From NCBI GenBank assembly GCA_025603075.1, contig MU626282.1, positions 1 through 64,000 of the forward strand: a stretch of 64,000 bases of DNA, written 5' to 3'. Below are positions 18,422-24,829 of the stretch, one piece after another. Position 1 is the first letter of the stretch; each line of letters starts with the position of its first letter. A program made the position numbers and the translations under genes. Source of the stretch: Neoconidiobolus thromboides FSU 785. Its lineage: Eukaryota > Fungi > Entomophthoromycota. The notes under the pieces are model-generated. The model made no database searches. It was given only the letters and a program-made list of their open reading frames with translations, and was not told where the DNA came from.

Positions 18422-18902
18422 ATGGATTACAAAGCAAGCGTACCAAGCATTGTGAATAAAAAAAGAAAATTAGATGTTGAAGAAGGTATTTTTTTTGAAA
18501 CTATGCCGTTTCATATGACTGAAGAGCAAACTATATCACCTGGAGAACCTCAAAATTCAAGTGTGGAGATACATAACATACCATTGAATGTAGTCTGCAG
18601 ACCAATACCTCCTGTTCTTGATGATTCTAAAGTCGAGATATTTAGAAGGGATCTGGAAGTAAATCTTTTCAAAAAAACTTGAAAGTAAAGTTAAACTTTT
18701 TTATTAGAATGGTGCCGACTTTCCACCCATTGATGTACATGAAATAGAACATGAGGGGAACTTTTATTACTATGCTTTTGGAGGTTGTCATAGATGGAGG
18801 GCTCATCAACTTTCAGGCAAGCAAAGCATCAAGGCGAAGATCATCCCTACTGATAAAAAAGTGCTCAATATTTACCTTGGGGCCTCAAATCCTTTCAAAT
18901 AA
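18422..18902 (+). CDS. SRX1: Sulfiredoxin; exons 18422-18658 and 18708-18902
   Basis: RPIPPVLD, PPIDV and the catalytic motif YYYAFGGCHR. Confidence 0.92.
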
Positions 18903-19013
18903 TTCTTATTAAACTTTCAATGTATTTTTTCATATTTTTGAGCTTTTAACCAATTATAATTTAGTTCACTAATTTTAAAGTGATATCTTTTTTAAATTCC
19001 AAAGGTTGGAATA

Positions 19014-20682
19014 ATGTATTTGAAATTATTCGCGCTATCATCAGCGTTAAAAGTGCTGCTGTTTAATGGATAGTAAATTGAAAAGTTATATAACATGAAA
19101 TAAAATATTTAAACTTTAATAGTCATTCCACCGATTTTGAAGTTCATAGAAATTGGCTAGCGATTACATATAGTCTTCCGATAAATCAATGGTACTATGA
19201 AGTAAGTAATAATTAGAAGCTAATGAAATAGAGTTGTAATTATGAAATCCAGAAAACAAGTGAATGGACATTAGATTATCCTCCATTTTTTGCATGGTTT
19301 GAATATTGTTTATCACATTTTGCTAAGCATTTTGATCCTAAAATGTTAGTGATTAATAATTTGAATTATAAATCTACTGGAACTATTTATTTTCAACGAT
19401 TTTCGGTTATCGTTTCGGAACTAGTGCTAATATATGCTTTGTATAGGTATTTACTTATATTATATATCAGCATTTATTACAATTTCGTTTTTAAAACTTA
19501 GACTTTCAAATCTTAAGGAATATAAATCAAATAGCTTAAGTAAAATAATGGTCGTCCTTACTTTTTTGAATCCATGTTTATTAATTGTGGATCATATTCA
19601 TTTTCAGTATAACGGTTTTATGTTCGGTATATTATTGTTGTCTTTGGTAGAAGCTATTCAAGTAACTTTAGTTGTTTTGCTATTTATAATATTAAATTCA
19701 ATTGCAATTCTAGACTAATTACATTTCCAGTGGTATTTTGTTTGCGATACTACTAAACTTTAAACACATTTTTTTATACCTTGCACCCGCCTATTTTGTT
19801 TTCTTACTTAGAGCTTATTGTATGAATGTCAACCAAGGAGGTTTAGCAATAGTCAGTTTTTTGAAAAGGTTGAGTTTATTGGGCTTATGTGTCATTTTCG
19901 TATTCTTGATTTCCCTATTTCCATTTGTTTATTATGAACAATTGCCCCAACTACTTTCAAGGTTATTTCCATTTCAGCGAGGATTATCACATGCTTATTG
20001 GGCACCTAATGTATGGGCAGTTTATTCCTTTATTGATCGATGCTTATTATTTATATTATCGAAATATGATTCAAGTTACCAAAATGTGGCATCCGTTACT
20101 CGAGGCTTAGTTGGGGACGTTCAATTCGGTATCTTACCTCAAATTTTACCTAAACATACCTTTATACTTACTTTATTGGCCCAATTACCCATTCTAGTTA
20201 AACTATGGATTAACCCAAATACCAAAAATTTTCTAAACTCAATTGTTTTATGTGGATTCGGCTCCTATCTTTTTGGTTGGCATGTGCATGAAAAAGCAAT
20301 TATGATGGTTTTGTTACCATTGAGCTTCATATGTATTGAGAACAGAAAGTTAAGAGCATTTCATCTCTTCATCAATGTGGTAGCCAATTTTTCGCTACTT
20401 CCCTTAGTATTTTACAAGTTGGAATCTATTATTGTTAGTATTATTTTACTTATTTGGGCTATTTGTGCCTCCTCTTTACTTAATTCAGTACCATCATCTA
20501 TTTTGATTAAAGTTTATTATGCTGGTTTCGCGGGGCTTAATGCTATTTTATTAGTTAGCTTTTTTGAAGTAGATATGTTTTTGAAATATTCATTTTTACC
20601 CCTACTTTTAACTTCAATCTATTGTGCTATTGGTATCATTGGCTCTTGGGCTTACTTTTATTTTTATGCTCTTAAATTGTAG
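19014..20682 (+). CDS. ALG8: Dol-P-Glc glucosyltransferase ALG8; exons 19014-19072, 19123-19201, 19253-19446, 19502-19661, 19714-20682
   Basis: [67 protein letters not shown]. Confidence 0.95.
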
Positions 20683-21152
20683 AGTTTTTATGCTTGAGGA
20701 TGAGTTTTTAGCAGATTTTGGTAGTGAAATAATATGACAATTGCTTCTTTAGTGCTATTTTGGGTTATGTTGCTTTTTAAATCTAATAAAAGCATCACTT
20801 AATAAATTGGAAAGAGCATATATGGGGTTCAAATATTCAAATAGTAATTTAATGGAATCATGTTTATATCATTAAGTTTTACTTAGAATTAAAAACAATC
20901 CATAAAATGTAAGTTCTTAAAAAATCTTATCCAAAAACATAATGTTCTAAAGTAAGAGAGATATTTACTAAAATAAGCCATGAGCTAAGAAAATTTATCC
21001 AATTAAAAATGATGACTTGAAAGCAGCCAATTACCTTAAGTCATATATTGAATATAGAAAATAAGAAAAATAAAAAATAAAAAATAAAAAATATAAAGCT
21101 ATTTATTTTGTTTGTTTCGTTCTTAATTTCATTTCGAAAGTATTATTAAAAC

Positions 21153-22927
21153 ATGATAAAAAACCATCATTATTACACCATGCTATCCGTAGTCACTAGA
21201 ATGCTGTTAATGCAGTTTAGGTAAGTTTATTATGGTTTAAACTCAAGGTGATAACTAATAAATGAATATTTAGTTTATACAAACAGCCTATTATTATAAC
21301 TAATAATATAACAAGTTTAGACATCTATAATCATGTAATTTATAATTTGTAAAATAAATCAAAGTAATTAACAATAATTTAATAGAAGGAGAGTATTTGC
21401 GAATTAGGGAATAATATGAGTGAATGGGTGAAATACACTATTGATTATATTCATTTTTTATTTCGATTAATAGCTATTAATCTCAATTTGAATGAATTTC
21501 ATATCAAATTAATTCAATTTGTATTTTATGATTTTATATTTATTTATTCTTTAATTAAGTAAGTTTTTTCAAATATTTTAAATATTAAACTAACTTTATA
21601 AAATAGATATTTTGAATCTAATACCATCAAAAGAATTCAAAAACATAACCCGTTGATATATTTAATTGTATTGAATCATTGCTTATTGACTATAAAAAGT
21701 GATAATTATTATTATGGTTTATTAGCTGGGACGTTATTATTATCTTTAAGAGAAATGATTCAGGTAATAAAATTTATTTCAATTAAAATAATCAAAATAA
21801 TTTTAATCTCGTAGGGAAATTACATGAATAGTAGTTTATTATTTAGTATTTTGATAAATTTAAATGATTTATTTATATATCTACTACCTACTTACATCAT
21901 CTATTTATCAGCCCCATTTGTCAAATTAATTCAAAGCACTAGAAGCTCAATTCCCTTTTACAAATTGATATTTCTATTAATGAACATTTATTTACTTACT
22001 ATAAATTCCACACACATTAATAATATACTTTACCTATCCAATGATTCTTTTGCTCAATTATTTCCATTTCAGACTAAGTCTCTCACTAGTCATTATCTAT
22101 CTAACTTTTGGTTGATATACTCATATACAGAACATCTACTCCAGCAATTAGCTATCAAACTTTACCAACTATCAACAAACATTCCTTATTTCGAAAAATT
22201 TTATACTTGTTTTTTCCCAATATCAAATCAGAAGCCGTTCTACTCTTATGAAGATGCATTATATCTACTACTTACAGACCCTCATGTAAATACTGTATTT
22301 GATATGTTTAGTAAAGCAATGCCTAAATCCCCTGAGGAGTATAACTATTTACTTGAGATTATCAAGCTAGTTCAATTCAAGTGGTTGGCTCAAATTTATC
22401 CTAATATTGTGATATGGTCTGGCATGTTGATTCAAATACCCAGTTTATGTCAATTAATATGTAGGCGAAATAAGCAATTTTTTATTAATTGTGTATGTAT
22501 CAGTTTGTTTTCAATTAGTTTATTTCAGTATGTTAGATTTGAGAATTTGATGGGTTATTTGCTAATGATAATAAGTGCTTTGTACATTTCAGCGGATAGC
22601 GGCAAATGTAACTTTATTTATCTAGGTTGCAATCTATTAGTGGCCTGCTATTATTTACTTGAAGTCAATGATATTAATGTGTTTTTGACTGTTACTTTAT
22701 TAGTAATAATAACGACTTGTTTAATTTATTTTACTAAACATTCAATTGTAATCAGCAATTTCTATTTAGTTTTGGTTATCATTTTAGTAGTGCCAATTGT
22801 GGAACATTTACTTTACCTTCTAGACGTTGAGATTTTGAAATTGCCATTTTATTTTAACCCACTTTGCATTGCCCTTGTTCACACTTTGCTTTTTGTTAAG
22901 CTTTGTTATTCCATGATTTTTGAATAA
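21153..22927 (+). CDS. Highly diverged tandem ALG8 paralog, 523 aa, intact frame; exons 21153-21220, 21274-21334, 21386-21558, 21607-21763, 21815-22927
   Basis: Four GT-AG introns with the same positions and phases (2,0,2,0) as ALG8. Colinear similarity: LNHCLL..GTLLLSLREMIQ vs [18 protein letters not shown]; FSILINLNDLFIYLLPTY vs [18 protein letters not shown]; QLFPFQTKSLTSHYLSNFWLIYS vs [23 protein letters not shown]. Confidence 0.85.
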
Positions 22928-23135
22928 TAAATAATAAATAATAAATAATCATTTGAGTATAAAATACGTATTTGAATTTCAATCAAACTGATAAATAAAT
23001 AATTTATTAAATTTAGTGTCAATTCTAACACTCTAATTTTTATAGCCTTAGCTTAACATTTAATTAATTGAAATGAATTCTATCTTCCACCAGGATACAA
23101 AACATAAATGAAGGAAAAAAATTGGTAATAAAAAG

Positions 23136-23451
23136 GTGAAAATAAAATTTTAAATTTCTTAATTTTCAGCTTAAAGAATATAAAGAATACCACTTTATAG
23201 TGATTATTCCTTTAATATGATGCAAAGAAGATCACCTATATGACTATGTAAACGCAGCAGTACATATTGCTGAAGATAGAGGTAAAACAATAATCAATAG
23301 AGGGTTAATTGTACTCCATGAACTGAATTATGTTAACTTTTTAAAATTATTGAGCTTATTAAAAGTCAACAACGTCGTCCGTGTAATGGACTTCGCCATT
23401 TTTAAGTAATATAAAAGCTTAGGGTGGAGCAGGACAGATTTAATGATATTT
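23136..23451 (+). pseudogene. Decayed 5' fragment of the COG2907 flavoprotein gene (paralog of 9546-11084)
   Basis: Translates as VNAAVHIAEDRGKTIINRGLIVLHELNYVNFLKLLSLLKVNNVVRVMDFAIFK*YKSLGWSRTDL, colinear with TNTAEHITEDGDKVSIDTGFIVFNELNYPNFLKFLSLLKVDYIPSVMSFAVSKQHGNLEWSGTNL; GTG instead of ATG, stops, GxGxxG lost. Confidence 0.85.
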
Positions 23452-24829
23452 ATTATGTCAATCTACGGGTTTATTCATAATTATAGATACAACACTTGTA
23501 AAAGCTATCCCAAAATTTCAAATGAGCAACTTTAGATCAATTTTTCAGTAGTTAGTAGCTAAAAAGTAATCATTGGAGTTAACCACTTAAAATTTCAAGA
23601 CACTCTTTCTAAGCACTTCGTGAGCAAGTGACATATTAAAAACTATTTATATTTCAAAGATTAGCACACGCTTACTCCAAACCAAATATATGAGGAGTCC
23701 ATTATTTATAATTACGTCCCAATTATTCGTTGTGAGAAAGCGCAATCTAAGCTACCAAAATATAATACTAATGGCTGATAGTTAATGGGTGTATAGTCAG
23801 ATTTCTATAATACCTATAGTTTTACTGATGCAAACTTTCATACTTATTTTTCTAGCTTAATATATTATTTTAATCAAATTATGGCTAAAGTCAGACATAA
23901 GGAACTTTTAAGAACAATTTTCCGTTCAAGCTTAGCCCCTACCTTTTTGACTGACATATCCGTGAAAAAACAATCATAATTTTTTTGTTGTAATTGAGTT
24001 TTATCTTTTTTGTAAACGATAAGCTAAACGCTTTTATCCATTGATGTTATTGTACTCAACCTTTATTGCTTCTATTTTTTTCCTATGAATTAGAAACTAT
24101 CATTATCAGTATAATTTTCTTATTTAGATTATTAATATATTGTCACTGCTCAATCCAATGTCATCTTCTACGTTTACTAGAGTTCATTATACCAGGATTG
24201 CAGTGACTGGTTATGTTTTATTAGCCAGATCTACAAAGTTGTTTGCTTTTAAGACACTCCTTTTTTCCGCTGCTTTTAACTTTAATCTATTATGGCACTG
24301 ATATTATCAGCCAGTGGACTTCTTTTGTTTTGTGCTTTAAAGAGACAAGCCTCTACGATAGAGGATGGATTTTCAATAAATCTTAATAGTAAAACAAACA
24401 TAAATCATCGTTCTGATGCTATTTAGTTACTGTTATCAATAAAGTACTTTATGTAACTAGTGAAAACATTCAATGATATTCATCATTGAATAATGGAAAG
24501 TATATCGAAAATTAATATAGTGATTTTTGCACATTCATATTAATACTCCTGTATTTGTATATTAATAAGTTTTTAGTTCATAGAGTGTTTAATGACTATT
24601 TTTATATTCATTAAAATTAATAGCATAGCTAATTATATTCGAAAATTTGTTAATAGTGTAATTTAAGGCAAAGTTTTCAAATTATACTTGAAGCTATTAG
24701 ACAGTTAAAGTGTAATCCAATTTTTTATGACATAAACGTTGGTAGGGTTCAGTAGGCTGAGAAACTATGAAAATCCTATAATAAATTACTTTATCATTCC
24801 CTCTTTTAAAAATAAAATTATATGTTAAA

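Follow-up and report, generated by a model that had tools for sequence, protein, structure and literature searches.

A stop-free tandem duplicate of ALG8 in Neoconidiobolus thromboides FSU 785 that lacks active-site residues of its family

Introduction

In the genome of the fungus Neoconidiobolus thromboides FSU 785 (Entomophthoromycota), the ALG8 gene is followed by a second, highly divergent gene of the same layout. The question raised by this locus is whether the second gene still encodes an enzyme, is a dying duplicate, or encodes a protein retained for another role. ALG8 is the Dol-P-Glc:Glc1Man9GlcNAc2-PP-Dol alpha-1,3-glucosyltransferase. Its Pfam family is PF03155 (Alg6_Alg8), and its CAZy family is GT57. 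The analyzed stretch of DNA (the window) comprises 64,000 nucleotides, positions 1 to 64,000 of the forward strand of contig MU626282.1 (assembly GCA_025603075.1). The second gene, here called the ALG8 twin, already has an NCBI entry, where it is a hypothetical protein that bears the Pfam domain. An initial annotation of the window, made without database searches, described it as an intact paralog devoid of the signature motifs of ALG6 and ALG8; the present analysis follows up that description.

Analysis procedures

Database searches and fold predictions were run with individual exons or with the public 464-aa gene model (P0001) as query, and the joined 523-aa translation was used in local scripts only. 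Retention of conserved residues was scored in a multiple alignment of the twin, the genome's ALG8 and 29 full-length ALG8 representatives, with columns conserved to at least 93% counted as near-invariant. Trees were built from 29 ALG8 representatives, the genome's ALG8, a partial ALG6 and the twin. For the neutral simulation, the ALG8 coding sequence was mutated at random toward the base composition of the twin, to 23.5% identity. In the constraint test, one pairwise aligner served both the pair of twin and ALG8 and the simulations, which were neutral, purged of stops and of the same identity.

Gene structure

The local DNA has a G+C content of 25-30%. The features of the locus are summarized in Table 1.

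Table 1. Coordinates of ALG8, its twin and the decayed third copy in the window
Feature	Position	Strand	Remarks
ALG8, parent copy	19014..20682	+	5 exons, 486 aa; family motifs including GWHVHEK all intact
ALG8 exons	19014-19072, 19123-19201, 19253-19446, 19502-19661, 19714-20682	+	Rebuilt from the sequence
Spacer, AT-rich, 470 bp	20683..21152	.	From the ALG8 stop codon to the first ATG of the twin; GC 0.23
ALG8 twin, whole gene	21153-22927	+	5 exons, 523 aa, stop-free
Twin exon 1, 68 nt	21153..21220	+	Ends in phase 2; donor GTAAGT
Twin exon 2, 61 nt	21274..21334	+	At the place of DFEVHRNW; encodes unrelated residues (..LYKQPIIITNNITSLDIYNH)
Twin exon 3	21386..21558	+	SEW kept (21419-21427); Asp-Tyr of DYPP kept as DYIH (21443-21454)
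Twin exon 4	21607..21763	+	KSDNYYY (21695-21715) instead of DHIHFQYN; flanking helix well conserved
Twin exon 5, 370 aa + TAA	21815..22927	+	C-terminal helices colinear with ALG8
Landmarks in twin exon 5	NLND 21857-21868; LFPFQ 22058-22072; NFW 22103-22111; VRFEN 22532-22546	+	
49-aa insertion in twin exon 5	22175-22321	+	
Fifth intron of P0001, 53 nt	22703..22755	+	Shifts the frame; would delete the last three helices
ALG8 3' fragment, pseudogene	23640..24397	+	C-terminal half; no N-terminal exons

The initial annotation had placed the twin about 470 bp past ALG8 and had joined five exons into one open frame of 523 aa. The distance is indeed 470 bp, and the rebuilt coordinates agree with that frame, which has no internal stop. 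An in-frame stop codon stands two codons 5' of the ATG at 21153. All eight introns of the two genes are of the GT..AG type and 48-55 nt long (50, 51, 55 and 52 nt in ALG8; 53, 51, 48 and 51 nt in the twin), with phases 2, 0, 2, 0 in both. The four introns had also been said to match those of ALG8. This holds for all four phases and, as to position, for introns 1, 3 and 4, which fall at the identical aligned residue in both genes (LL../, IY.L../ and IQ/.NY, with the slash at the junction); intron 2 lies 9 residues farther from the SEW anchor in the twin. A 9-aa insertion where twin exon 3 begins would account for this offset. The donor of intron 2, CAT/GTAATT at 21334/21335, is the only one that keeps the frame, and P0001 uses it as well. 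An alternative donor, the GT at 21349, was rejected, as it brings a stop into exon 3. Twin exon 2 has no Pfam match, and the AlphaFold pLDDT is below 50 there.

The last exon of the twin matches, with 100% identity, a hypothetical protein of N. thromboides FSU 785 in NCBI (P0001), and this public JGI/NCBI model agrees with the rebuilt gene at four junctions. Translation of P0001 begins at the second Met (21180), and the model has a fifth intron in addition, with plausible ends (GTAATA..CAG) and a sequence CTAAA that resembles a branch site; the protein terminates 24 residues after it. This intron is probably a mis-prediction or a minor splice form. The unspliced 523-aa form is favored over P0001 because the frame, if not spliced here, continues for another 74 codons, over which the other two frames hold 7-11 stops, because the ALG8-family HMM aligns the twin colinearly up to residue 519, and because the model of exon 5 has confident tail helices (pLDDT 70-90).

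Directly 5' of the twin, the DNA at 21060-21095 is A-rich and periodic (AAAAATAAAAAAT-like); right behind the twin's stop codon, at 22925-22950, comes a repeat of the type AATAAAT. Farther upstream, the public 619-aa protein P0003 (window 18422-20682, plus strand) joins a sulfiredoxin gene to ALG8 through an intron of about 140 nt that bypasses the sulfiredoxin stop codon (..IPTDKKV/GIMYLKLF..). Since local introns are about 50 nt long, against about 140 nt there, P0003 looks like a fused gene model and not like a genuine fusion protein.

Family membership

The twin scores above the curated cut-off of PF03155 (25 bits), with 36.1 bits (E 5e-9) for exon 5 alone and 56 bits (E 4.7e-15) for P0001; the short N-terminal exons have no Pfam match. 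The corresponding values for ALG8 are 298 bits (exon 5 alone) and 539 bits (public model P0003). An HMM built from ALG8 only gives 79 bits on the twin. BLASTP aligns the twin to the adjoining ALG8 with 30% identity over 223 aa (E 5e-18), and in the multiple alignment the identity is 23.5% over 438 columns. Against the genome's ALG6 the twin gives nothing below E = 1, while ALG8 and ALG6 match each other at 5e-20. ALG6 also differs in intron layout, with one exon that runs from before DFEAQRHW to past DYPP.

A HMMER search of 1.84 billion representative proteins returned the twin itself first and all others at no better than E 3e-12. Among the 104 other matches, every one that spans the motif regions carries the ALG8 signatures, including HVHEK. 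A search for orthologues had been proposed with the initial annotation; neither an orthologue nor a close relative was found in these proteins or in the other searched collections, and a word-based search of 5.8 billion clusters returned P0001 itself only. An assembly-wide search with the twin DNA and the exon-5 protein detected no additional copy and showed that the 49-aa insertion is not repetitive.

Judged by pairwise and profile scores, the motifs of the matches, the intron layout and the adjacency, the twin is clearly a local tandem duplicate of ALG8, not of ALG6, and an orphan in public data. The relationship proposed at the outset, a tandem paralog of ALG8, is thus borne out by profile, BLASTP, introns and adjacency. 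Assignment to another GT-C family, which the same annotation had raised as the competing outcome, was discarded: Pfam, up to E 10, lists PF03155 alone. The ESM-Atlas feature neighbors of the twin are PIG-U, PIG-M and ALG3, which is a lead only.

The end branch of the twin in the mixture-model tree has roughly ten times the median length of the family, at about 10 substitutions per site. A quick tree placed the twin beside the ALG6 outgroup, a case of long-branch attraction, and the tree was not used for placement. The twin and ALG8 are saturated for dN/dS.

The assembly (24.6 Mb) contains one ALG6, one ALG8 and one ALG10, plus the ALG8 twin; ALG6 and ALG10 are each present at a single locus. 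The genome's ALG6 (contig C103, L004:1978-2424) reads ..HYFRYN.. in place of the family's HFQYN, and its other motifs (DFEAQRHW, DYPP, FPLQRG and QVHEK) are intact.

Active site

Conserved basic and His residues of GT-C enzymes hold the phosphate groups of dolichol. Only 27 of the 81 near-invariant ALG8 columns are retained in the twin; by class, 20 of 48 non-polar, 6 of 32 polar and 2 of 21 ionizable columns are kept. Yeast ALG6 (PDB 6SNH/6SNI) is the only solved member of the family. A phmmer search with P0001 as single sequence against solved structures gave no match, and the Alg6 residues could be mapped only by way of a family profile. The ALG8-family profile matches yeast ALG6 chain 6snh_X with E 1.4e-61 and places the Asp of DFEVHRNW at 87, the Asp of DYPP at 117 and the His of HVHEK at 396. 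The numbering of this chain is offset by 18, so these are native Asp69, Asp99 and His378. The roles of the residues are taken from papers citing Bloch et al. 2020: D69 is given as the catalytic base of yeast Alg6 (PMC12653191), His378 and Asp99 are described as essential in the same enzyme (PMC10859629), and the catalytic base of this GT-C class is located on the first helix of the first luminal loop (PMC13503287).

At the position of Asp69 the twin has Gln, in both the multiple alignment and the intron-guided alignment, and the entire 8-residue motif is replaced; the loss of the catalytic-base position in the first luminal loop, implied by the initial annotation, is therefore supported. The position of His378 is occupied by Phe395. 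The motif replacements listed in the initial annotation were recovered for DFEVHRNW (..YKQPIIITNN..), DHIHFQYN (KSDNYYY), NFKH (NLND) and HVHEK (VRFEN). That of DYPP was recovered in part: both Pro are gone, but the Asp is kept as Asp63 in DYIH, the counterpart of Asp99 in yeast Alg6. The Glu of HVHEK is kept as well (E396), as are the motifs SEW..DY, LFPFQ and N.W..Y. The basic and His residues that have disappeared are, in ALG8 numbering, K181, H182, R247, R253, H257, H354, H356 and K358. Other acidic residues in the first luminal loop of the twin are D39, E45 and E49. The loop after FPFQ..N.W, counted from W to the next conserved L, has 91 residues in the twin and 39 in ALG8; a gain here had been noted before, but it amounts to about 52 aa and not to about 60 aa.

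With the counterparts of Asp69 and His378 and nearly all conserved charged and His residues of the substrate site lost, the twin is very probably inactive as a Dol-P-Glc transferase, being unable to transfer glucose from that donor. We infer from the number of basic residues lost that transfer from a dolichol-phosphate sugar of any kind, and not the ALG8 reaction alone, is disfavored. A relocated catalytic base among D39, E45 and E49 would still be formally conceivable.

Open frame and constraint

A third copy of ALG8, about 700 bp downstream of the twin, provides an internal neutral control. This fragment (23640-24397) is 38% identical in protein to the C-terminal half of ALG8 and, within 220 codons, is interrupted by 8 stops and 2 frame changes, which agrees with the earlier remark that a nearby duplicate had decayed. 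At the DNA level it is 65% identical to ALG8 20261-20732, including about 50 nt beyond the ALG8 stop codon. The twin and ALG8 give no match at the DNA level; the twin has therefore diverged at least as far as the fragment.

The coding frame of the twin has no internal stop, whereas 52-62 stops occur per frame in the remaining five and shuffled coding sequences contain 39 on average; the chance of a stop-free frame of 523 codons at its composition is about 1e-17. In the neutral simulation the mean number of stops was 32 and the minimum 19, and none of the 300 runs was stop-free. The suggestion that a frame free of stops at such divergence reflects selection is upheld by these figures. The four GT..AG introns are intact, the indels are all in frame, and no disabling change was found. 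From 20683 to 23700, in any frame, the last exon of the twin is the sole ORF of at least 60 aa. The locus is single-copy and continuous in the assembly. An origin of the open frame from chance or from long neutral drift is excluded. GC3 does not discriminate (0.267 in the twin, 0.269 in ALG8 and 0.30 in the pseudogene, with an intron GC of 0.175). Look-ups of the exact products (P0001 and the exon-5 ORF) found no other contig, hence no transcript and no second isolate or assembly.

The replacements themselves are conservative. The hydropathy correlation of twin and ALG8 is 0.565 (simulated 0.349 +/- 0.044), or 0.67 after smoothing (simulated 0.37 +/- 0.09), and for non-identical pairs it is 0.384 (simulated 0.132 +/- 0.051); the mean BLOSUM62 score of non-identical pairs is -0.23 (simulated -0.77 +/- 0.085), all against a simple simulation model (uniform sites, no transition bias) that calls for a loose reading of the effect size. 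For three of these measures (the correlation before smoothing, that of non-identical pairs and the mean BLOSUM62 score) none of 150 simulations came up to the observed level, and the multiple alignment gives the same outcome as the pairwise test. The replacements have thus preserved the pattern of a membrane protein, with the polar active-site residues free to change. Frame integrity and conservative replacements together point to past selection on the twin.

Predicted structure

AlphaFold2, run on P0001 with 42 aligned ALG8 sequences, gave a model with a pLDDT of 71.8 and a pTM of 0.75, which, being guided by a true ALG8 alignment, shows compatibility with the fold and is not independent proof of it. 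The low-confidence parts of this model are residues 15-51 (first luminal loop) and 293-310 (insertion); for the N-terminal 50 residues of the twin the pLDDT is below 50. The top-ranked Foldseek match of the model is yeast ALG6, and the predicted structure has the GT-C fold with the helix arrangement of ALG6.

Interpretation

The reading to which we give somewhat better than even chances is that the twin is a non-catalytic GT-C membrane protein, derived from ALG8 and kept intact by selection. It would have originated in a lineage-specific tandem duplication of ALG8, followed by divergence to about 24% identity with the gene still intact and spliceable. The product would be a multi-pass membrane protein with the GT-C fold of ALG6 and ALG8, and the canonical pathway is carried by the intact ALG6, ALG8 and ALG10 elsewhere in the genome. 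The twin may be located in the ER and may owe its action to the fold and to the enlarged luminal loop, with binding of a partner protein or of a lipid as one conceivable mode. With the predicted fold of an enzyme kept and the catalytic residues lost, it would qualify as a pseudoenzyme. A more specific proposal, advanced tentatively and with somewhat less than even chances, is that of a pseudo-glycosyltransferase born from ALG8, which preserves the fold, is catalytically dead, resides in the ER and is kept by selection for a non-catalytic job. The protein might associate with the enzymes of glucosylation or the oligosaccharyltransferase, or modulate them; alternatively, its enlarged luminal loop might bind a dolichol-linked ligand. 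ER location, inactivity and any present function of the twin are what we infer, not what was observed.

That the twin is a dying or recently dead gene, long under selection but with its function since lost or marginal and its stops not yet accrued, appears unlikely, although far from negligible. It would suit an orphan of one genome that borders a stretch of decayed gene relics, the ALG8 pseudogene among them, that has diverged to an extreme degree with a degenerate N-terminal region, and for which the look-ups of exact products turned up no transcript; strongly relaxed constraint would also fit the extreme branch length. The pseudogene, however, sets a narrow limit. Its 8 stops in 220 codons correspond to about 19 in 523, so that a fair chance of being stop-free would leave the twin a neutral time of at most about one sixth of that in which the fragment decayed. 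All eight splice sites of the twin are moreover intact, its indels are in frame and its replacements are conservative. With long neutral drift excluded, the twin, if dead, died recently.

The initial annotation had offered two roles, a non-catalytic one and that of a transferase with a different donor or acceptor. The former appears to be the better reading; an active GT-C transferase of new specificity, with its catalytic and binding residues relocated, is improbable. The retained predicted fold, the kept D63 (counterpart of Asp99) and E396, the new acidic residues of the first loop and a fourth luminal loop larger by about 52 aa could all be accommodated by such an enzyme, but the base, His378 and nearly all conserved Lys, Arg and His positions, of the kind that would bind the phosphates on the dolichol-linked donor and acceptor, are now uncharged, Pfam matches no other GT-C family, and no conserved clade suggests a stable new activity. 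Very improbable indeed is that the long open frame is an artefact of annotation or assembly, or due to chance. The public model departs from the homology-based one at both ends; the single-copy, continuous locus, the minute probability of so long a stop-free frame and the colinear homology to ALG8 across all five exons nevertheless speak against it.

Comparison with known systems and significance

Among soluble enzymes, dead paralogues are a familiar phenomenon; for the large GT-C membrane glycosyltransferases few are known, and a literature search found no paper on a dead paralogue derived from ALG8. The direct parent shares with the twin the tandem arrangement, the positions and phases of four introns (with the offset of intron 2 given above), colinear helices and a PF03155 score above the cut-off; the twin differs from it in the low identity, the lost motifs, GWHVHEK among them, the loop enlarged after N.W and a profile score of 56 against 539 bits. 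From yeast ALG6 it is set apart by the absence of counterparts of Asp69 and His378. By analogy, the proposed role would resemble that of PIG-U, a subunit of GPI transamidase that has the GT-C fold and serves as a scaffold. PIG-U, however, is an ancient protein that is conserved throughout the eukaryotes, has PIG-M and not ALG8 as its relative, and works with known partners, whereas the twin is an orphan with no known partner. Other examples are the AdoMetDC prozyme and the DHS paralogue of trypanosomes, dead paralogues that regulate their active twin (PMC5201418, PMC3663545). They likewise combine duplication of an enzyme gene, loss of catalytic residues and retention of the fold, but they are soluble and their heteromers and activation have been demonstrated, whereas any such part for the ALG8 twin is hypothetical.

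The practical weight of the finding is modest, as it concerns one little-studied fungus, with no orthologues found in the searched collections and no transcript in the look-ups of exact products. If the twin is made and functional, it would offer a young example of how a transferase of lipid-linked sugars becomes a non-catalytic membrane protein, and would be a young counterpart of PIG-U. Parent, twin and decayed third copy, side by side in N. thromboides, form a natural series that may reveal what a protein must keep of this fold after it has ceased to be an enzyme.
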